A stretch of 49,129 nt of DNA. Source: Pelomyxa schiedti (Eukaryota; Protista; Evosea). The notes under the pieces were generated by a model. The model searched no databases, was not told where the DNA came from, and worked only from the letters and a program-made list of their open reading frames with translations. Shown here one piece after another: positions 1-48,770 of this stretch (positions are counted from its first letter, which is position 1; every line of letters starts with the position of its first letter). Both the position numbers and the translations under genes were made by a program. Location: positions 1 through 49,129 of the forward strand of contig JAHLWZ010000913.1 of NCBI GenBank assembly GCA_020536535.1, in the 5' to 3' direction.

Positions 1-32
1 AAACAAAAGTGAAGCTTATAAATAAAGTGTGT

Positions 33-106
33 CGCCCACTCTGGGGCTCGAACCCAGGACCACTTGATTAAAAGTCAAGCGCTCATGCCATCTGAGCTAA
101 GTAGGC
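33..106 (-). tRNA. trnK-UUU: tRNA-Lys(UUU)
   Basis: Reverse complement GCCTACT...AGTGGGCG; anticodon arm CTTGA-CT TTT AA-TCAAG; T-loop GGTTCGAGCCC. Confidence 0.95.
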
Positions 107-237
107 TGGCAAAAAGAAGCACTCTCACAATTAAAGAGGAAGGAGAAGGGGGGGAAAAAAAAAGAAACAGAAACAAACCCTTGAACACCAACCACACACA
201 AATACAGAAGCAAGAAGAAAAGGAAAAAAAAAAAGAC

Positions 238-320
238 CGACACCAGCAGGATTTGAACCTGCGCCTCCAACGGAGAAGTGATTTCTAGTCACTCGCATTA
301 GACCACTCTGCCATGGTGTC
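238..320 (-). tRNA. trnS-AGA: tRNA-Ser(AGA)
   Basis: GACACCA/TGGTGTC-G acceptor stem; AGTGA-CT AGA AA-TCACT; long variable arm; GGTTCAAATCC. Confidence 0.95.
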
Positions 321-437
321 TTCTCTTATACATTTTCTATCGTTTATATGTGATTATACACTGTAAAAGGAGGCACAAAACGGGGTGGGGGAAAAAAAAC
401 AAAAGATTGGATGGGAAGGGGAGCGGGGGAAAAAAGT

Positions 438-524
438 TCCTCGCTGCCGGAATCGAACCAGCGACAAATGGATTACTTTGCTTTGCACTACAGTCCACTA
501 CTCTACCAACTGAGCTAAGCGAGG
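438..524 (-). tRNA. trnY-GUA: tRNA-Tyr(GUA) with a 14-nt intron (474-487) at the canonical 37/38 position
   Basis: CCTCGCT/AGCGAGG-A acceptor (C1-G72, eukaryotic Tyr identity); GTGGA-CT GTA G[TGCAAAGCAAAGTA]A-TCCAT; GGTTCGATTCC. Confidence 0.95.
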
Positions 525-656
525 TTTCAGAGGTATGTTCAGAAAGACCTCTCATGTATTTCTCTCGTATCCAACCAACGGCAGAAAAGGAGGAAAAACC
601 TCTTCAAATGCGAGAAGAAGCGGGAGCTTTTGTGCATCTTTTTTGAAAAAAAAAGA

Positions 657-738
657 TGTGTTCGATGGGATTTGAACCCACGCCACCGAAGTGAACAGAG
701 CCTTAATCTGTCGCCTTAGACCGCTCGGCCACGAACAC
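657..738 (-). tRNA. trnL-AAG: tRNA-Leu(AAG)
   Basis: GTGTTCG/CGAACAC-A acceptor; ACAGA-TT AAG GC-TCTGT; long variable arm; GGTTCAAATCC. Confidence 0.95.
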
Positions 739-992
739 TACAGAGTTTGAAGCAAGGTCTTGCACTACGGGTAGCTCCACCCAAAAGTGTGGGAGCGAAG
801 CGAACCAACCACCCGTCGCACCTATTCTTGCATTGTGTGTGTAGAGTGCCTCTTTGCCACTCCTATCTAATAATTCTTCTCCTTCCTTCCCTCCCACCAA
901 CACAGCTTGTTTGTGTGACTTTCATAATGATGTAATGTAGAAAGCATAAAAGTGTCACTCATGCCTCTGCAAAAGTACTTGTTGTAGTAGCT

Positions 993-1076
993 CTCACAAG
1001 TTCCCACCCACCATTATCCTCACAAAAACCCTCACCACTACAACCTCCACAAATGCCCACTACAATTCTCACAAAA
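993..1076 (+). repeat. Degenerate ~23-26-bp tandem repeat (CTCACAA...CCACTACAA) in the Leu-Ser spacer
   Basis: Units start at 993, 1019, 1045 and 1068, each beginning CTC(C)ACAA; CCACTACAA is present in two units. Confidence 0.5.
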
Positions 1077-1169
1077 GTGAATGAAAAAAAGCACAGAACC
1101 GAGGTTCTTTTTTTTTCCCCAAAGCACCGCCACCGCCACGTTCAACGTCAAGGTTGTATTTTTTTAGAG

Positions 1170-1252
1170 GACACCATGGCGGAGTGGTCTAACGCGGTAG
1201 ACTTGAAATCTACTCTCCTTTGGAGGCGCAGGTTCAAACCCTGCTGGTGTCG
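1170..1252 (+). tRNA. trnS-UGA: tRNA-Ser(UGA)
   Basis: GACACCA/TGGTGTC-G; GTAGA-CT TGA AA-TCTAC; variable arm; GGTTCAAACCC; followed by a T-run. Confidence 0.95.
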
Positions 1253-1492
1253 TTGTTTTTATGTTTTTTTTTCCCCTGGTCCCTCTTTTTTGTTGTCTTG
1301 CACAGCCAAAGAAAAAAGTGGAAAGAACATATACATAGTAAGTAAGTACATCAATAAAAAGACCTTTTCAAATAATACCTATCATTGTCACAAGATGAAG
1401 GACTCAGCTCAATCCAATCATTCATACAACCAACAGTGGTAGTAATAAACCAAAAAAAAGTTAAAAATTTTTTTTAAAAAAAAAAAAGTATA

Positions 1493-1564
1493 CGCCCCAT
1501 GCAGGGGTCGAACCTGCGACTCCCGGATTAGAAATCCGGTGCTCTTCCTCTGAGCTAATGGGGC
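1493..1564 (-). tRNA. trnR-UCU: tRNA-Arg(UCU), intronless
   Basis: GCCCCAT/ATGGGGC-G; CCGGA-TT TCT AA-TCCGG; GGTTCGACCCC; downstream T-run. Confidence 0.93.
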
Positions 1565-1699
1565 ATGCTTTGGTTCTGCAAGAGATTGGACTTTATAACT
1601 GAACTGATACTCAAACGTCTAGTCCAAGCAAACCGGGATGAAATTTTTTTGACTTGCACACACAGTCATCTGGACATCTCTACCTTGCTTTTATTGATA

Positions 1700-1770
1700 G
1701 GCTCTGTTGTTTAGTGGCAGAATACTTGTTTTGGGTACAAGTGGCCCCGGTTCGATTCCGGGCAGAGCCC
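1700..1770 (+). tRNA. trnP-UGG: tRNA-Pro(UGG)
   Basis: GGCTCTG/CAGAGCC-C; CTTGT-TT TGG GT-ACAAG; GGTTCGATTCC; TTTT downstream. Confidence 0.93.
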
Positions 1771-2021
1771 TATTTTAAACTCTGTGTTGTTTTGTGTTGT
1801 GGCTGCGTGGTGCTGTTTGCTGTTGGTTGGCATGAAGATTTTTTCCCTCTGTTTGGCTTTTTTTTGCATTTGTTTAGTTTGTGTGTTTAGTTTGCCTGAT
1901 GTCTTCTCCTCTTTACATGCACTCCAGCAACACAAAAAAGAAAAGAAGAGTGTGGTGATGGATGCTGCTCACTTCCTCAGGGGAAAAAAAAACAAAAGTG
2001 AAGCTTATAAATAAAGTGTGT

Positions 2022-2095
2022 CGCCCACTCTGGGGCTCGAACCCAGGACCACTTGATTAAAAGTCAAGCGCTCATGCCATCTGAGCTAAGTAGGC
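2022..2095 (-). tRNA. trnK-UUU: tRNA-Lys(UUU), second copy
   Basis: Identical to 33-106. Confidence 0.95.
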
Positions 2096-2133
2096 TGGCA
2101 AAAAGAAGCAAGAAGAAAAGGAAAAAAAAAGAC

Positions 2134-2216
2134 CGACACCAGCAGGATTTGAACCTGCGCCTCCAACGGAGAAGTGATTTCTAGTCACTCGCATTAGACC
2201 ACTCTGCCATGGTGTC
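2134..2216 (-). tRNA. trnS-AGA: tRNA-Ser(AGA), second copy
   Basis: Identical to 238-320. Confidence 0.95.
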
Positions 2217-2333
2217 TTCTCTTATACATTTTCTATCGTTTTTATGTGATTATACACTGTAAAAGGAGGCACAAAACGGGGTGGGGGAAAAAAAACAAAA
2301 GATTGGATGGGAAGGGGAGCGGGGGAAAAAAGT

Positions 2334-2420
2334 TCCTCGCTGCCGGAATCGAACCAGCGACAAATGGATTACTTTGCTTTGCACTACAGTCCACTACTCT
2401 ACCAACTGAGCTAAGCGAGG
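2334..2420 (-). tRNA. trnY-GUA: tRNA-Tyr(GUA) with intron, second copy
   Basis: Identical to 438-524. Confidence 0.95.
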
Positions 2421-2552
2421 TTTCAGAGGTATGTTCAGAAAGACCTCTCATGTATTTCTCTCGTATCCAACCAACGGCAGAAAAGGAGGAAAAACCTCTT
2501 CAAATGCGAGAAGAAGCGGGAGCTTTTGTGCATCTTTTTTGAAAAAAAAAGA

Positions 2553-2634
2553 TGTGTTCGATGGGATTTGAACCCACGCCACCGAAGTGAACAGAGCCTT
2601 AATCTGTCGCCTTAGACCGCTCGGCCACGAACAC
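2553..2634 (-). tRNA. trnL-AAG: tRNA-Leu(AAG), second copy
   Basis: Identical to 657-738. Confidence 0.95.
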
Positions 2635-2672
2635 TACAGAGTTTGAAGCAAGGTCTTGCACTACGGGTAGCT

Positions 2673-2714
2673 CCACCCAAAAGTGGTTCGCTTCGCTCCC
2701 ACACTTTTGGGTGG
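2673..2714. repeat. 13-bp perfect inverted repeat (fold-back) at the array/unique-sequence junction
   Basis: CCACCCAAAAGTG (2673-2685) and CACTTTTGGGTGG (2702-2714); 2684-2714 is the exact reverse complement of array spacer 777-807. Confidence 0.9.
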
Positions 2715-2748
2715 TTGCCTATTTTATTTTTTATTTTTTTTTCGTTTT

Positions 2749-5700
2749 TTAGCTGTTTCCTGGGTTGAAGAAGAAATTGAAGAAGGCAGAAACGCCCTCT
2801 GGTATGGTTGTCTCTGATGGGGGTGTTGACGGAGGAGAGGCAGTTGGTGGGGGCCGTGGAGCGGGCATTGTGGGAATAGGTAGTGGTGGTGGTGGAGGTA
2901 GTACTGAGCCCGGAGGTGGTGGTGATGTACGTGGTGCGGGTGTGTAAGGAACTGGTTGCCATGCTGAAAGAGTAGTGGTGCTGTTTAGTGCATTCTCTGG
3001 TGTACTTTGTGGAGGGGGTGCTGATGCTGATACTGAAATAAGATGTGGTCCGGCTTTTACCACTGATACAACAGGCCCACCAGCTAATCCAGGGGCTGCA
3101 GTGATACTCACACCACCGGGATGTGTTGCAGTTTTGGTCCTCCCAGATATGCATTGCAATCTCTTCATGCTCTTACAGTTCCATACAGCAATACTCTATG
3201 TATAGGTTAGTTTCTCCCGCTAAAGTGAGTAAAGTGCAACTTTGTCAGAAGAGGCACTCCATAACTGCTCAGGAAAATTACTGCCTGGAAAATTTACAGA
3301 AACCATGGAATTCACTTGATCACCATGAGCATTGGGGAAGAAAGCAGTACACCTGCCAGTCACATATCCACTGTGTGTGCCATTTCTATATTTGGTTAGC
3401 CTTTTCTGTTTGTTTAGTTAAAACTACGTTGGTTTCTCCAGCTCCCATGCACGGACAGAACCAATAGCGGAACTGCAAGATAAATTTAGTTAGAAAGCAA
3501 ATCTTTTGGGAAGATTTACGCAGTGCACAGGAGATTCATTTCTGGAATCCTTGCTAATGACGTTGTTGCTCCAGATAAGTGTGGTACCCATCGGTATACC
3601 ACTTCAAGGGTCTGTGGGTTTAGTTCAACAACGTCATTGTTGCTGAGTCCTATGACCAGAATATCCTACCCTAACGTAAAAAAAAAAACATAACTCTTAC
3701 AGGCATTCTATAACCTCATCACAAAAGATTGATGTTGGTTGTATGGACAGAGATGCAGACCGCTCCAGAGTGTGTCCATCCCAAGCACATATCTTGCCAT
3801 CAGCAAAGCCTATCCATACAAGTGCGGAAGAGCGTTTGATTGAACTGCCTTCTGAGGCAAGTATTGAAGGCAGTAGTGAGGCACCAGAAGGGGAGGCGCT
3901 GGTACCAGAGTACATACAAATAACAGCAGTTCTGATAAATCTAAGATTAAGACAGTGGGTATGGGTCAGACCGAGTATTGGAGGCAATGAAGCGTTCCAC
4001 CATAGTATGGGTCAGGGCATCAATTATAACCAAACAACCATCACTGGTTCCGCACAATACAGATGTGTCAGCAGGAGCACCACATCTCACTTGATCTACC
4101 TCTAGTGTTGATACCTACTAACATATCAAAATTGGCCATAACCATGATTATTATACCAATGAAAAGCCCGACTTAGAAAGAGTATAAGTATTTAGCAGGC
4201 CAGACTCAAACGCTACCCAGAGTTTATTGCAACACCATATTGCGAATAGTGGATTTGTCTGGGAAATTGTGGTGCTCACAACAAGAGGTGACGTAACTTC
4301 ATTTGGAGAGTACGATAAAACGTACGTGGCAGAGGCATCTCTTTGAGAGTTAGAGGGGCCCGAAAATTTGTTGGTATACAATTCCTTCTCAGTCACCTGG
4401 GCTGATGTCGTTGAGTTCAAAATTTCAACAATAGTTTTGAGCAGAGGTCTTGAGAAAGTTGGGTTTTCGGCAGTCTTCACCAGTTCAATAATTGCAGGAG
4501 GACAGTCCTGTGAAGGTTAATGGTGGATAGGAGGATAGCTATGATACCTCTGTGAGAGATTTGGTCAGTTGAGTCAGCTCAACATTTGACTTGGCAACAT
4601 TCGGCACGTACATTTCCCACAGGAGAAGAAGGAAGCTGTGTGTGCATTAGAGAAAAACTTGTCTGGAAAAGGAAACCAGAAGACATCAAATTCCTCTGTC
4701 CAAAAAGCTGCCTTGATGAGGAATTTAAATTTAAAAATGGAGGATCAGGAATACATATTTATTAGCCCAGGTAGGTTGAATCAGCTCTGAAGCACTAAAA
4801 CCTGCCTTGGAACTGACTGGCGAGGTGTCACTAGGTGAAGGATTTGGTGACATCCAGAAGGGACCTTGGCTAAAGGAATCATGCAATCCTGGGAAATACG
4901 GTATTCCCAACTTGCAGGTAATATTACTCCCAGTGTGGTTAATCCATATATTTTGACTGTAGGTACTTCAGCATTACCGAAAAAAAAAAAAAAAGATAAC
5001 CTGTGGACTCTACCATGGAACAGAGGAGGAACTGCTGTATGCAATTCTTTCAAAATGGAACACAGGTTTCGTGAAATCCTTCCCTTGTTTAGAGTGAAGT
5101 AAATAAGGCAGGACAATACATCATCTTCTCTTCCAGGGTTACCCCATCATGTGTTAGGAAGTCATGGAGAAGAAGCCCACCAGGTTCAGTATAAACAGAA
5201 CAGGTAGCCTCAGATATCCCTAACTTGGGATTCATTGAAAGTTCTGAGATCTATACTACCTTTTATCTGCAACAATCCTTTGAATCCACGTAGAAGTGCC
5301 AGTTTCGTAAAGAACACATCAATTGAATCACGGGGAATGGAATCAAAAGAGTGTTGTTGGAATCCAGAAAGTTCTGGCAACTCCTGTATTATAGGATTTT
5401 TCGTGGAACTGCTAACTGTGGTTTCTGAAGCAGTATTTGGCTCGTTCTTGGAATTGAGATCACTGGAGTCAGGAGATACACTCCTTTCCTTTTTTCCAAA
5501 CACAGGTAATGCTTCCTCACTGTGAGCTGCATCAGGTAGCAATAGCCGAGCGCACATATGTATCCCTGTTTTACGACATTTGATCCAGCCCCAACCATCC
5601 CGCGCCCCTCTCACACATTCCCTCTGTGTAAATTGGCACAGATGACAACTGGGGCATAGAATCAAATGGCGTGATAGTGGCTGTAAAACTCCAGCATGTA

Positions 5701-8700
5701 CAACACTGCATGTGGATTGCATGGCAAGTACTTGAGATAAGAGTGTATTTTGTGCTTGTCTCGGAGAGAGTTGAGACACTGTAGTAGCTGTGTGTGGAGG
5801 CATACGAACAGAAACTGTTGTTGAATTTTGAGAAAGAGAGAAGAAAACGAAGGCAATTTCATGTCCAAGAAGAAGTAGCACCGCATTTTTCCAAACAGAG
5901 AGCCTTTAGTAAAACTTAAATTTAATGGCGATCTTGGTAAGGAAACCTTTGAACACCGGGAATAGACATAGTTGCTGAGAGCAATTCTGTTCCAGCATTT
6001 GGAGGAAGGTGCTGCAATTCGAAGACATGGGTAATCTCAACAGTCGCATTTGGGATAGCAGACCACCACCCCTCTGTCATTCCAGAAAGTTCTTGAGACA
6101 TTAGTGTTGGGCACAGAAACTATTACCAGTAAGGGACGTTCATATTTTTAATGAGTCAAAACCTGTTCCACTATATTGGAGGAATTTCTTGTTGGGTATC
6201 CAAAAGAAATGGCCTCCAAAACTTCACAAATGATGTTCCAATCAGGTTTGCTTGAAAGGCCACAGTGGCCTGTTGCTCTATTCTATGCTATCTTTAATCT
6301 TGGGAATGAAGAGAAAAGACATACTTCAGTAGCCTCTCTTAGCCAGTCGAACCATTGAGCAAGCCAACCAATATTTATAACAATCTTTTCTCGCAAAATC
6401 AAAATCAGACCTTGTGGGGAACAATCAACAGACTTAGGTAAATAGTAAGAAATACACACCCATTTCCGACATGAACCTTCGTAACTGCCATGCTTTACCA
6501 GGTTCAATCCCACAGTCAACTGCCCACGCCAAAAACGTGGGTGCTGTAGTCAATGGCGTTGACATAGATCTGTTCCTCAAATATTCAGCAAAAAAGACCC
6601 AGCTCTCGGGTATGACCTGCACTGATTACCACTTGTTACAAATCGTAAGAGCGACCTTGTTCCCCTTCAGAATATTGAAAATAGCATCTCTAAGTTCAGT
6701 AATCCTACCATTGCCTGTAGGAATGACATCACGCAATCCAGCGTAAAGTGCCTAAAAAGTATGAGATAGAAAAGAAGAAGTGTGTAAACTTTTGGATAAC
6801 GGTGCTTGGCATGTGCAATGTTACTCATTGCATCATTTTCTACATCAGAGTCTGCATGTGTACCAATAAGGAGAAGTGGAGAAATATCACTGGCGTCTGT
6901 TAGGCACAAAACCCAATTCATGAGGTAATCCACCCAAGAAAAGTCCTTCTGTAAAAAGTACAATCAGTTCAAGAAGTAAAAACAGAAATACTTTTACCTT
7001 CTCAGCATTAAAGACAATTACAAAAGTATTTGAACCATGAGGTAAGAAGTAAGGAAGTACATTGAGGTATTCTGGATCTCCAGTAAAGTCCCAGAGGAAA
7101 ACGGTAGTTGCCGGAGAAAATGAAGTAGTATCACTATAGAGTTGTTGGACAGTAGTGATAGAGAGTAAAGGTATTTCAGCCTCCGTCTTGGAAATCCTGT
7201 TGCTGTGCATTGAAGTGAGGTACGTCTATCTGCATAAATCAAAAACCTTCTTCCCAAGGCTCGAGATAATGAATTAACCACAGTAGAGGTGCCAGCCTTA
7301 TGACCACCCAAGAAAATAATTCTATGTGACTGCCAATTAGATGCCGACATGCGTACCATTTCTAAATGTCTGCCATCCAGTTAGAGGACTTCAATAGTTG
7401 AGTATACTTTTTCATGGCTTTCCATTGCTTGTTAGGTATATCTTTCGGAAAACCAGTCAAAGGGTTCCCTAACCATTTTACATCCTGGGAGTTCCAAATA
7501 AGTTGTTTGTTGCGGGTGGGAAAAAAAGAATCACCTTGAGTGGCATTGTTGCAAGCCATGTTGGGAATGACTCAAAATTATTGCCAGACAAATCAAGTGT
7601 GCGCACTTCAGTTACAGAGGCAAGGGCCTCAGGAAGTGTGTGAAGTTGCATGTGTGAAAAATCAAGAGTTGATAATTCCTTGGATCTCAAATTACGGTCG
7701 ACATCAGCCGCTTTTCCAGCAAGTAATGCATCAAGAATTTGCTTTTTCATGAGGGACTGAGCCTGTGTAGTGGGTGTCATTTGTTGTTGAGGTTGAGGCT
7801 GGTTTGGTAGAGAAGTGTGGGAATTGAGTAGAATCTTGCTCCCAGATGGTACAGTTGCTGATTGATGAGAATTGAATGAGAAATAGGAGGTTGCTATATG
7901 GTGCATTACTAGATCTACATTTTTTCCTGTTTTGGAGCTCACTTCAAAGAAGTCCATGTGTCTTTGTGATTTTGGTTGAAAGGTTAGCATTACAGGTAAT
8001 GGTCTTACTCTGACTTCGAAAAAGCTCTGCCCTCTTCAAAGGAAACAGTTCGTCTCTTGGTATGACAGTGGTTTCCCACAATCACTTTACAGATATCCTG
8101 CAAGTTCAGATAGGTGGCAGAGTTCCGGATCCACATGGTTAAATCTGCATCTTATTAATACCTACAACTGTAAGAACACTTGTGCTTGCTTGAAAAAGTT
8201 TCTCTGTGTTTTATGCTGTAAATGTAGACAATAGCAAAGCATTTGTGAAAATAGGATCCAGTTAAGAACCGGAAACGTTCTTGACCTCTTATAAACTATA
8301 AGAAAAACGAGAAGGAAAAATGAACAATACTGTGGTTGATGTATTACAATCCTAACACATCTTTCACCTACATGTTCTATTCTACTTCTGGATGACATTT
8401 CTTTTTTGTTTTTTTTTTTTGGTTATTTATTTCAATGAAAAAAATGGATGGAATAAAAAAAACTCCAGGTACCAACAGCTAGCTCCGCCAACTTGAGAGT
8501 GTCCACTTTCGCTGTATCATCTGAACGCATGAGACCTGGAATTCAAGGTCACGATGTTACGAAGTTCGAGTCTCTGCAATATAAACCGGTCCACGTAGAC
8601 CACAGCTGCTCCTTATCAGCCTCGTAGTCCCCCAACATCAAGGCGTGAAACGACTCTTCTTTAGTAACACAAGGGGCCGCATTTCCACTCAACTTACGTG

Positions 8701-8707: not shown

Positions 8708-9065
8708 ATCCACACGCACCGTATTCCCTCCTCTGAGTTTATTACAATTTATGCAATTATTGTGTTTCTTCCAAAGAAAACCCCAGAACAGCCAAGGCAG
8801 GGAAACAGCGCCAACGGAAAATGGGAAATCCAGGCGATCTGATCGTGGGCTTCAGAGACCGCTCCGCTGCGGCGATCACCGCTCCATTTCTTTTCTATTT
8901 CAAAAAAGGAACCCGAAAAGAGGCACGACTACATCGCCCGCGCGTGAGGTCCCACGCCAACAACCAAGTTAACAACAGCACCATCATCAATACTGTGGTG
9001 CCGCCGTTGACAGGGCGCCTACACAACACCAACACCAACAACAACAACAAGACAACAACACGGCC

Positions 9066-20321
<11,256 letters not shown>

Positions 20322-26894: not shown

Positions 26895-30411
<3,517 letters not shown>

Positions 30412-41800: not shown

Positions 41801-43104
41801 TGAAGGCTTTGGATTTCTCATTGAGGGAGTAGATTGCTTGCACACATTTATCATAATTTTGAATGTATGGTGTGTATACAGCTGAGATAGAAGCAACCTA
41901 TCATTTTGATTGGAAGAGCTAACAGTGAAGGAGGAAACATACAAAAGGTGAAAAAACATCAGCCAGGCTGGACTCAGGAGTCCAACTTGAGTCATATTGT
42001 TTAAGGGCCTCACACAAGTTGCTAGACAATTTCTCGATGTCGGTGATATTATGAAATATAATAGGTATAAGTGTGGGCTTCATAATCGAAGATCCTGTCT
42101 CTTTGATGGGGTTCAAGTATTCCTGCGTTGTTACAATAATATTAAAAACTGACCAGTACCAACAAAGTATTGGGTGCAAAAGAAAAAAAAAAAAAAAGGG
42201 AATGGGGACAGGGAGGTCGGGGGTGAAGAAGTACATTGATCAGGACACCCAAACCCCTGAGGTAAGTCTTCTCAGTAGTGTACAATTCCTCCAACACCCT
42301 CTGGCGCTTTCCATCAGGTCCGGGCAAGTACTCCCTCTTTGGGACCAAAATAGACGGTGCCCTCCCACCCAGAACCCCCGAGGCTGAAGCCCCTCCCACA
42401 ATTGCAGACAAGGCCCCGTTCACGTTCACGTTCCCGTTCCCGTTCCCATTATTACTCGCACTGTCGTTCCCATTTGCAGTTCCGCTTGCCCTTCCGCCGG
42501 CGCTCCCCGTGCTGTCCACAGACACGCGCTTGGTGCTGCACTGGCTCCCGCTGTCGGAGGAGCTCCCGTCCGCACAGACGGCCGGGGCGCATGGCGGCGC
42601 CTGGGGCCCCGCGGACGTCCTCTTGCCCTCGGGCCCGGGGCCGCCGCCCCCGCCCGGGGTGCTGGCCCCGCCCTCGCACAGGACCCCCCCGCTGCTTCTG
42701 TTTTCTCTCGCGGTGGTGTTGCTGCCACCGCCGCCTCCGCTGCTGCTGCTGCCGGGGTCGGCGTCCGGGACGATTACGTCGGTACTGGTGGCGTCGCGGT
42801 GGACGTCGCCCGGGCATGTCGGGGCGGCGTGGGCTGGGGGAGGCGGCGGCGGAGGGGTGGCTGGCGGGGTAGGGGGAGGCCGCGGGCCCAGGGAGGCCGA
42901 GGCCGTGGACGAGGAGGGAGGGGGCGTGGCTGGTGGAGGCGGGGGCTGCGGGCGCCGCGGGGCTGCTGTCTGGGGAGGTGGGGGAGGCGGGCGGCTGGGG
43001 ATAGGGCGAAAGGGCTCGACCTCGGCAGTCGTGGTGGTGGAGGTGGTTGGAGCAGCGGGGGCCATGTGCCCTGCTCCGCTGGGTGCGTGTACTACCGCTG
43101 TCAT
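38852..43104 (-). CDS. FGD/Frabin-like RhoGEF: Pro-rich N-terminus, DH, PH, FYVE, possible alpha-crystallin-like domain, low-complexity tail
   Basis: DH: RQRVLEELYTTEKTYL, YLITPIQRVPRYTLLL. PH: EGYLFKECRK, HFWLFSDCLIYG. FYVE: APVWLQD...[28 protein letters not shown]...RVCKFC. Confidence 0.9.
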
Positions 43105-45952: not shown

Positions 45953-46258
45953 ATGGCGACCACCACGTCGTGGGCAGAGCAGTCCTTCGCCGAGGAAGAG
46001 GGAGGCCAACAGTACGACGAGACGTACGTCGACGACGGCGGCGGCACCGGAGACGACGCGCAGAACCAGAGCTCCAGGGCCTCGGCGCCGTCATCCTCCT
46101 CGTTGCAGCCACAACAACAAAGTGCTGCGCGCGGCCGCGGCGCCCGCTACGCAAGCAACAACCGCTACCTCGGCGACCCAGCCGCACTAAACACCCACCC
46201 ACAACAGCGCTACCAGCAGCAACCACGGCAGATGCACATGCAGATGCAGATCCCCCCG

Positions 46259-46298
<40 letters not shown>

Positions 46299-46569
46299 GC
46301 GTGCCACAGCAGATGCAGATGCAGCAGACAGAGAGGCAGCGGTATAGGCGGGTGGTCGTGGAGGAAGGAGGTGACTATTATGACGAGGGCGAGGGCCGAG
46401 GCTCGGCGGAGGGCGTGGCTGCCCACAGGAGCCCCCCTCCCACAATGGACAACGGCCGGCAGCGCGCCGGGCCCTACAGGCACACCACCCCTCCCCCGCA
46501 GCAGCAACAGCAGATGCATCAGATGCAAACGCAAGCCCCAGCGCAAGTGCAGCTGCCTCTTCCGCCTCC

Positions 46570-46649
<80 letters not shown>

Positions 46650-48770
46650 TACGGCAGATGAATCAGGCAGTAACTACCTCTGCGAGTAACACCCAGTTCA
46701 TTAACACCAACAACAACAACACCTACTACAGCGGAGGAGGAGGCAGGGGTCGGGGGCGGGGGCGAGGCCGCGGCGCCATCTACATCGGGGATGGAAATGG
46801 GAATGGGAATGGGAACGGCAGTGGGACAATTCAGGGCGTTGACCGTGTGTCACTGCAGTCCCTTGGCGGCGATGGGATAAACATCGAGGTTTACGGCATC
46901 GACGAAGCCGACGCGACTCCTCTGGGTGACCCCTCGTCGCGGAGCTACCCTCGGCCACAACAACAACAACAACAGCAACAACAGCAGCAACACTCGTACG
47001 CGCCCCCTCAAAGGGCCAGCCAACCACACACGCAAGCACAGTACCAGCACCCTCACGCCCACGCGCAGCCGTACCAGCCCGAGCAGCAGCAAGTCCAAGA
47101 GAGGCAACGGTCACAGCCACAGCCGCACCCGCAGCAGCAGCAGCGCTGGCAAGCACAACAGCAAATCCAAGAGAGGCAACAGTACTACCCCCCTCATCAA
47201 GGAATTCCACAGCAGCCAGCCAGGTATCAGCAACAGCAGCCGCCGCCACGCGTTGCTTCTTATCACCAGAATCCACAAGGGATGGTGGTGCACCAGCAGA
47301 ACCGAGGGTACCAACAGACTAGTGCGTATGCTGCACAGCCTAACGAAGAACTTTCACTTCAAGAAGCACAAAGGCGAATGCAAGCCAAACTTACTGCCAA
47401 GCGAATTGAGCTGACCAATAGTGTTGTGGCAAACAAATCTGAGCCCATCACGAAGGCAAAACCAAAAACATCCAATGTTGCACCCATGTCTACTGGGGAT
47501 AGGGATACACCAAATTCGCCAATTGAAAATAAACCCCACGTCGCTGAGAAAGGTGCCTATGCACCAGCGAGCCACTGGAGTGAACCAGACAATTCCCTTC
47601 CAAATGCTCCTCGTTTTACCCGAACTGTTAATGATGGCCAAGTTGTAGTGAAACTTGCTCTACCATCAACTCCAGGTATAAATTCTAACCCCGAGAAGAA
47701 TATCCCCATAGTTCCCCCTGCTTCAGCAGTGTCACCTCTCAAACCCGCAGCAGTACCGACGCAAGGTGCCTCTTCCCATTACGTTCAGCCACAGCATCAA
47801 AGTAACAGTGCACGTAATCTCCCCCCTGTTGCAGAAGTAGCCACTTCTGATACCAGTAACACAAGGCCTCCTGTCCTCACTCCCACCAGGCGGCAACAAC
47901 AAAATCAACCAAAGATTAATGTGAGAATGTCCAGAAGAAGCCCACATGCTGCTCCAAGTGCATGGGATTTCAATCCAACTTCAGAAAATAATACACCGAA
48001 TGCAAATTGTGCCATCAACAGCGAAAAGGACCAAGTAGCCCCTGAAAAGAGTGCCCAGCAGGACCCGAATCCTGGAGTATCCCCTCTGCCCCCCAGCATG
48101 ATCCCTTCAAATAGCGAGGGAGATCGTGCCACTGTACAGCATCCTACTCCACAGACCAAAGTAGCAGCTTTGGATGACAGGTCAACACCTAAGCAAGCAC
48201 CCACAACCTCAGGCGAGCAGGGACCGGTCCTACAAGATACCACCCCAACACCCTCAAATGGCAGCAGTACTTCAGCAGTTCCGGACAGAGAGGAGAACCA
48301 GGCGGAGGCCACACAGGAGCAAATTGATGACGGCGCCGAAAATGACATTGTTGCAGAAATTGCATTTTCTGATGGACAAGTGGTGGAGCTGCACTGTCCC
48401 AAGGTTTACTTGCACTCCTATCGCGCGTTATTTTTCTTACCACAACAAGGACGGGGACCCCCATGAAGCTGCTACGAAGTTTGTGGAACAAACCGGAATG
48501 CCGCCGCACTTTATTGCAGTGATTGAGGAACACCTAGCCAGTCTCCTTTCCCAACAAGGGGAAGAAGAAGAAGAAGAAGAAGCAGAAGAAGAACTAGACC
48601 CACAGAATCAAGAACAAGACCAGCAAAATGTTGAGGGTGCACCAGAGGAGCGAGTACCGGAAAATGAGCATGAACAAGAAGAACAATATGAGCCAGAGGA
48701 CCAATTGCAACAGGAAGAGGGCCAAGAAAACCAAGAGGGAGAGGGAGACCAAGTACAGCACAATGACTGA
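45953..48770 (+). CDS. Gln/Pro-rich low-complexity protein with RG repeats, a C-terminal PFU-like module and an acidic tail
   Basis: ATG at 45953 (MATTTSWAEQSF); open frame to 48403; GT-AG intron 48404-48449; last exon to TGA at 48770. Confidence 0.75.
46571..46648 (+). repeat. Pure (CAG)25 plus CAA microsatellite encoding Q26
   Basis: Uninterrupted CAG run 46571-46645. Confidence 0.95.

Follow-up and report, generated by a model that had tools for sequence, protein, structure and literature searches.

Tandem arrays of transfer RNA (tRNA) genes have been described in Entamoeba (Clark et al. 2006; Tawari et al. 2008, PMC2652664; bioRxiv 10.64898/2026.07.06.736064), and passages of this literature portray head-to-tail units of about 0.5-2 kb that hold several tRNA genes in mixed orientation (PMC2652664; 10.64898/2026.07.06.736064), with up to seven genes per unit in E. 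invadens. The genus is reported in the same passages to lack telomerase and telomere repeats, and a telomere-like role has been proposed for its arrays. The Entamoeba comparative study had, in the passages that concern its sampling, no data at that time for Pelomyxa or Mastigamoeba, and the Mastigamoeba genome paper describes 219 tRNA genes that are scattered, without any arrays. Entamoeba is not alone in having tandem tRNA arrays: Schizosaccharomyces japonicus also has long tandem multi-kilobase units with many tRNA genes, which had earlier been collapsed and were revealed by depth and long reads (PMC7619369). Here we analyze a 49,129-nt stretch of the archamoeba Pelomyxa schiedti (assembly GCA_020536535.1, contig JAHLWZ010000913.1, positions 1-49,129; the stretch is referred to as the window and the contig as C913), the first 2685 nt of which are occupied by tandem copies of a seven-gene tRNA unit bounded on the right by a 42-nt palindromic element. 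Taken as a whole, the evidence indicates that this locus is probably the right-hand end of a multi-copy chromosomal tandem array, which appears to have been amplified from a founder cluster and is most likely internal rather than telomeric.

The window contains 11 tRNA genes, all located within positions 1-2685. ARAGORN detects none in the remaining 46 kb, and all 11 genes exceed the Rfam tRNA gathering score (55-69 bits versus 29). The complete unit in its long form spans 1989 bp (positions 1-1989, delimited by direct repeats and an own-genome search) and carries, from left to right, tRNA-Lys(TTT) (33-106, minus strand; 64.4 bits), tRNA-Ser(AGA) (238-320, minus), tRNA-Tyr(GTA) (438-524, minus), tRNA-Leu(AAG) (657-738, minus), tRNA-Ser(TGA) (1170-1252, plus), tRNA-Arg(TCT) (1492-1565, minus) and tRNA-Pro(TGG) (1700-1770, plus). 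The Tyr gene, left unnamed by ARAGORN, contains a 14-nt intron (474-487) between tRNA positions 37 and 38, and the two Ser genes, Ser(TGA) and Ser(AGA), are inverted repeats of each other (83%). At least four T residues, a polymerase III stop signal, lie within 3-25 nt 3' of every tRNA gene of the unit, among them a T run downstream of Lys, T11 starting 4 nt downstream of Ser(AGA) and T9 starting 3 nt downstream of Leu. With their cloverleaf structures, T-run terminators and lack of an encoded CCA, these are normal eukaryotic tRNA genes, and the unit serves to provide additional copies of tRNA genes as a block.

Head-to-tail repetition is evident from two direct repeats, 1-121 with 1990-2110 (spacing 1989) and 226-525 with 2122-2421 (spacing 1896). 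The last unit is a partial one of the short form (1990-2685; Lys 2022-2095, Ser 2134-2216, Tyr 2334-2420 and Leu 2553-2634, all on the minus strand), and the repeat ends at 2685. In a pairwise alignment with the first copy, it lacks a 93-bp spacer segment (122-214) and carries a handful of changes within 216-225 and a single substitution at 346. The unit spacers contain 41-47% G+C. Tandem Repeats Finder reports no short tandem repeat (STR) in positions 1-6000, and no other Rfam family, 5S included, occurs in the unit spacers, the sub-threshold matches falling on tRNA genes or on the boundary palindrome. A first-pass annotation of the window had described a unit of about 1989 bp with these seven genes in this order and on these strands, repeated head-to-tail with near-identical spacers, poor in STRs and running off the left edge; all of this is confirmed, including the contig end at the left edge, as C913 starts at window base 1.

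The array terminates on the right in the full palindromic element (2673-2714, plus strand), which consists of two 13-nt arms (2673-2685 and 2702-2714) and a 16-nt loop (2686-2701). As single-stranded DNA, the element is predicted to form a 13-bp stem and a 16-nt loop with a folding energy of -14.6 kcal/mol (z -5.4). The unit-to-unit join within the array carries a half element instead (777-807), composed of the first arm followed by the reversed loop, with the second arm missing; the own-genome search matches it to 2684-2714 on the minus strand, and no stable fold is found for it. Relative to the internal unit, the boundary is marked by an inverted loop and by the presence of the second arm. 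Beyond the element lies a T-rich flank (2715-2751), seen after other full elements too, and from 2752, about 40 nt away, follows the 3' end of a spliced minus-strand gene. The adjoining single-copy gene or genes extend over 2752-5443 on the minus strand, as supported by RNA contigs and their joints and by DNA depths of 24.9 and 9.34. The joints in RNA contigs also reveal nine introns of 39-47 nt with GT..AG ends in the neighboring minus-strand gene at 3195-5259.

At first impression, the right boundary appeared to be an amplification chimera. This interpretation was rejected, because the same element and flank are present at a diverged paralogous cluster on contig C237. A single copy of the cluster, with all seven anticodons in an unchanged cyclic order, lies 2.3 kb from the end of that contig; its genes are 91-100% identical to those of C913 and its spacers about 77% identical. 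There, too, the Leu gene leads into the same palindrome and about 10 nt of the same flank. Since the Leu gene on C237 adjoins the same full palindrome, the terminal element is ancestral and the internal join is derived. The flanks of C237 show no tblastx match to those of C913 or of C1041, a contig described below. The right array-to-gene boundary is native, and the junction between array and single-copy DNA that the first-pass annotation had placed in the window is genuine, as indicated by its conservation at C237 and by a step in depth.

To place the element in its genomic context, we scanned the whole genome for two 11-nt arms 10-30 nt apart, using the reversed pattern as a control. The full element occurs at 27 genomic sites and the control pattern at none. 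Eight of the 27 sites lie 32-456 nt from tRNA genes, counting only tRNA genes located beforehand. In all six cases that can be oriented (C913, C237, C213, C1019, C725 and C1016), the polarity is the same, and the order is invariably tRNA cluster, arm, loop in one orientation, arm, short conserved flank and T-rich DNA. A scan of metagenomes with the palindrome pattern returned 17 matches, mostly perfect-palindrome stem-loops, none of which has the loop and flank of the Pelomyxa type.

Half elements consist of the first arm and the reversed loop without the second arm, and their break falls 0-3 nt from the loop-arm border. One half element per unit is present in the C913 array, in a Gln-Lys array (C3186 and C4759) and in a five-gene array at the end of C962; half elements are found on C725 and C1662 as well. 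The full element that corresponds to the Gln-Lys array is located on C1016, next to a lone copy of part of that unit, and C1016 displays the same inverted 30-mer signature as the C913 window. On C725, the order is Trp, half element, Cys, Val, Trp, full element and flank. In the three arrays with a visible left edge, the half element lies 130-300 nt inside that edge in every case. The layout common to these loci is a left flank, the last gene with a half element, the rest of the unit and so on, and finally the last gene with a full element and the right flank. Breakpoints thus recur at one stem-loop border, accompanied by inversion of the loop.

This recurrent anatomy can be accommodated by the following amplification scheme. 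We infer that a founder cluster with the order Ser-Arg-Pro-Lys-Ser-Tyr-Leu was amplified into the array and that a single diverged copy of it survives on C237. The native right edge of the founder would have been the polar 42-nt palindromic element, which would remain intact only in the last unit, every internal join carrying a version that is severed where the loop meets the second arm and has its loop flipped. The first duplication may have been set off by a fold-back template switch provoked by the palindrome or by a cut at the base of the stem, after which the freed end would have rejoined upstream. Unequal exchange would then have expanded the array, and gene conversion would keep the copies alike. 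Two alternatives also fit the layout, namely the integration of a circular unit by homologous exchange, which is taken up with the depth data below, and a rolling-circle-type mobile cassette.

In the second alternative, the tRNA cluster would be the cargo of a mobile cassette, the polar hairpin would serve a hairpin-recognizing rolling-circle enzyme, and arrays would result from failed termination. Such a cassette would account for the observation that C237 and C913 share the cassette only, their flanks being without similarity, for the one-sided and polar nature of the element and for the recurrence of breaks at the same stem-loop border; Helitron-type Rep domains are, moreover, encoded in the genome. 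Helitron-like elements are expected to insert between A and T, to begin with TC and to end in CTRR, with a hairpin about 10 nt ahead of that 3' terminus. The palindrome-bounded tRNA clusters have the hairpin, but neither a CTRR-type terminus after it nor a TC end. A search for conserved motifs at the opposite cluster ends yielded only homopolymer matches, and a target-site duplication around the element, apparent by eye at two of five sites, was rejected for want of consistency. Furthermore, no Rep gene is linked to any array, and the cassette is deduced from anatomy only. We consider it unlikely and retain amplification from a palindrome-bounded founder. The Rep matches themselves lie at C1445:1767-2297 and on C4466 and C668, one of them within a 694-codon open frame.

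The copy number of the array was approached through sequencing depth. According to the P. schiedti genome paper, the 52.4-Mb assembly of 5337 scaffolds was obtained from seven single cells by GenomiPhi amplification and was accompanied by Smart-seq2 transcriptomes. The public runs that match the window comprise one DNA sample and single-cell RNA libraries, all from one study. Assembled contigs of these runs were searched, not raw reads, and depth is accordingly one k-mer figure per assembled contig. In run X1, contigs composed of spacer only have k-mer depths of 1232-2541 compared with 24.9 for the 5.6-kb contig of the neighboring gene, and a contig across the unit join (779-884) belongs to this high-depth spacer set. 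In run X2, the spacer contigs have depths of 982-3841 compared with 9.34 for the flank. Overall, array contigs reach 60-400 times the depth of the adjoining gene, far beyond the roughly twofold excess of a local duplication, and the summed depth, which is in the thousands over the array, declines to that of the flank between bins 2601-2800 and 2801-3000. At the boundary, the fall takes about 100 bp. Amplification bias is expected to vary over kilobases, and the step at the boundary is for this reason unlike such bias.

The high-depth material is also heterogeneous. Sequence variants are present at positions 148, 382, 1263, 1806, 1808 and 1984, several of them each with a depth above 1000, and the long and short spacer forms both occur at high depth, the joint from 188 to 2104 having a depth of 1323 in X1. 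Two more unit fragments are found in the assembly, C3141 (96% identical) and C3599 (rearranged between the inverted Ser genes), and the genome holds at least four distinct versions of the unit. On C3599 (L004:1-761), the segment between the inverted, 83% similar Ser genes looks flipped, which reflects either an exchange-driven inversion between the Ser genes or a chimera. The array at C913 is a multi-copy array, and we tentatively estimate its size at tens to hundreds of units from k-mer depth on phi29-amplified DNA.

Two rival explanations of these depths have to be considered. A simple two-copy local duplication, or an artefact of assembly or amplification, might be suspected from the 1.35 assembled units and from the chimeric joins in run X1. 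The 60-400-fold excess of depth over the flank and its abrupt end at the boundary, the presence of at least four distinct unit versions and the retention of the boundary sequence at the diverged paralogue C237, which is impossible for a chimera, together exclude a two-copy duplication and leave this explanation with hardly any probability. Alternatively, the chromosome might carry two or three units only, the depth being contributed by extrachromosomal circles favored by phi29 rolling-circle amplification. Whole-genome amplification was indeed used, a one-unit circle would hold the internal join, which is the form found at high depth, and the array layout is the expected product of circle integration by homologous exchange. 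Nevertheless, unit variants that have diverged to as little as 96% identity suggest that many copies have persisted for long, other arrays of this genome collapse at contig ends likewise, and the data contain nothing specific to circles. We therefore regard circles as improbable, and a multi-copy chromosomal array as the better account of the depth.

The first-pass annotation had further raised the possibility that the array forms a chromosome end with a telomere-like role, as proposed for Entamoeba. This idea draws on the array running off the contig end and on the failure to find a long canonical telomere repeat in the assembly. However, base 1 repeats position 1990, so that C913 stops within a repeat, and the contig ends at base 1 because of repeat collapse. 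A candidate left flank is provided by C1041, the last 124 nt of which match unit positions 664-787 exactly and are attached to unique DNA. The join is located about 275 nt past the end of a plus-strand open reading frame, in an orientation that fits the left flank of the C913 array, and in the own-genome search no contig other than C1041 and C913 has unit spacer beside unique DNA. A sister array, the Trp-Cys-Val array on C725, is internal, located at 60-62 kb of a 70.9-kb scaffold with unique DNA on both sides.

The presence of a telomerase gene in P. schiedti also argues against an end cap. Contig C931 (L077:2960-4926, minus strand) contains a telomerase reverse transcriptase gene split by short introns, whereas Entamoeba is reported, in the passages cited above, to be without telomerase. 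Two of its exons match the telomerase RNA-binding domain above the cut-off, another matches residues 823-857 of human TERT (E 2e-7), and the translation shows recognizable motifs T, 1/2, A, B' and C. Genome-wide, four units of the vertebrate-type telomere hexamer occur at three sites compared with 21 for the reversed form (about sevenfold more); the placeable sites are short runs, the single sequence examined lies inside its contig, and neither form was observed in a long array. Given the left flank on C1041, the internal array on C725 and the telomerase gene, the claim of a chromosome-end structure is not borne out: the end-cap reading is unsupported, and we hold it to be very unlikely. Most probably, the array sits in the interior of a chromosome, flanked by two convergently transcribed genes, and does not substitute for a telomere.

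Transcription of tRNA sequences of the unit is indicated by RNA contigs, which are of single-cell origin and carry the Smart-seq2 template-switch oligo. Such contigs start straight after the oligo at positions 1700 (Pro, where RNA depth is 1600-2000), 1564 (Arg), and 524 and 2420 (Tyr). RNA contigs joining 473 to 488 lack the 14-nt Tyr-GTA intron, which occupies the canonical 37/38 position. As judged from the tagged 5' ends and the spliced Tyr transcripts, Pro, Arg and Tyr tRNA sequences are made and processed; their source may be the array, C237 or other identical genes.

Several observations weigh against the interpretation of this locus as the edge of a long, internal and expressed array. 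The DNA derives from single cells and was amplified with phi29 polymerase, which biases depth and creates chimeras; the reads resource itself warns that contig depth is not a copy number; and runs X1 and X2 represent one sample, probably the assembly's own data, and hence are not independent. The assembled array at C913 amounts to 1.35 units only. The C1041 junction could be chimeric, the C725 array is interrupted by a run of N in the scaffold, and a search of the assembly found no long telomere repeat. RNA reads are not assignable to array copies as opposed to C237 or other identical genes. Finally, two X1 contigs connect positions 146 and 1977 of the array with interior sites of C714, 13176-13205 and 18719-18748, which are 5.5 kb apart and on opposite strands. 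These loose ends were considered as further edges of the array and rejected, since both map inside C714. The joins are probably phi29 chimeras and serve as a warning for junctions seen only in amplified DNA.

Beyond C913, further arrays are present on C962, C3186, C87 and C725, and single interior clusters on C213 and C237. Among the best 63 tRNA matches, 25 lie within 1.1 kb of a contig start, compared with about 11% expected at random positions, which suggests that repeats responsible for breaks in the assembly harbor many of the tRNA genes. The array on C962 (34669-37667; L032, L078) runs off the contig end and has a five-gene unit of about 1.5 kb (Leu-CAG, Pro-CGG, Arg-TCG, Val-TAC and Leu-TAG) that includes a (CA)63 microsatellite and one degenerate half element. 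C3186 (913 bp) is a collapsed array of a 670-bp Gln-Lys unit, and C87:738-1898 is a collapsed array of a 513-bp Ile-AAT unit in which the palindromic element is absent. The whole of C1662 (L033:1-3899) is a 3.9-kb palindromic contig whose 1807-nt arms are 99% complementary; each arm carries Lys, Arg, Asp, His, Gly and Pro genes, the 285-nt center holds a Thr gene, and a half element is located near each outer end.

Elsewhere in the window, long open frames on the plus strand at 12757-18222 match Laminin_G_3, a neurobeachin-type solenoid, PH_BEACH and BEACH, and represent a BEACH-family gene. Four islands of 60-63% G+C, compared with a background of 41-47%, are located at 9001-10000, 27001-28000, 42001-43000 and 46001-47000. 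They contain long open frames on both strands, without a Pfam match.

The Pelomyxa and Entamoeba arrays resemble each other in several respects. As far as the passages of the Entamoeba papers go, both hosts are archamoebae, have several distinct arrays per genome and keep the copies within an array nearly uniform. Arrays of the Entamoeba type are further characterized by tens to hundreds of units each and by containing nearly all tRNA genes of their genome. Certain isoacceptor linkages of the C913 unit are found in Entamoeba as well, namely Ser-AGA with Lys-TTT and with Pro-TGG, and Pro-TGG with Leu-AAG; in the published table, four of the 21 isoacceptor pairs of the unit share a unit in some Entamoeba species, an overlap of untested significance. 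There are also differences, within the same passages. The C913 unit is devoid of STRs, whereas complex STRs lie between the genes in E. histolytica and E. dispar only, and Pelomyxa spacers, at the G+C content given above, contrast with the extremely A+T-rich spacers of Entamoeba. Unlike Entamoeba, Pelomyxa has single dispersed clusters beside its arrays and a telomerase gene, and no terminal position has been shown for its arrays. The suggestion of the first-pass annotation that the array extends the system to another lineage holds in so far as a further host is added; that host, however, is an archamoeba, a free-living relative of Entamoeba and not a distant lineage.

Comparison with more remote systems places the Pelomyxa array among known repeat families. 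The S. japonicus arrays differ from it in being centromeric or next to one telomere and in being mixed with 5S rDNA and long terminal repeats (PMC7619369). Tandem families of the rDNA type likewise undergo concerted evolution, which in Pelomyxa is reflected in near-identity within the array (99-100%) versus about 77% for the spacers at the paralogue; such families consist of one polymerase I operon, whereas the Pelomyxa unit combines seven kinds of polymerase III gene. In the animal Xenopus laevis, a 3.18-kb repeat with eight tRNA genes in mixed orientation is reiterated in tandem on the order of a hundred times, and to our knowledge it has no link to a palindromic boundary element.

The P. 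schiedti genome paper makes no mention of tRNA, and our literature search found no paper linking Pelomyxa with tandem tRNA genes. Likewise, the passages of the Entamoeba array papers contain no mention of a palindromic boundary element. The novelty lies in the host, in the coexistence of the arrays and telomerase, and in a palindromic element that marks boundaries and joins. In its broadest form, the proposal would be that the palindromic element is the engine of array formation in Pelomyxa, that clusters ending in it are amplified and perhaps moved through a hairpin-dependent reaction, which each time breaks where the loop adjoins the second arm and inverts the loop, and that hairpin-seeded arrays are ancestral to Archamoebae and the source of the Entamoeba arrays; we put this forward tentatively, as a possibility more doubtful than not.

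The origin of the Entamoeba arrays has been a standing question since 2005. In contrast to collapsed array contigs, the C913 window offers a real array-to-gene boundary together with a surviving founder-like paralogue, and the recurrence of the palindrome at boundaries and unit joins points to a concrete mechanism of amplification. The occurrence of arrays in the free-living anaerobe Pelomyxa indicates that the trait is tied neither to parasitism nor to the loss of telomerase, and makes the choice between one origin and several testable.

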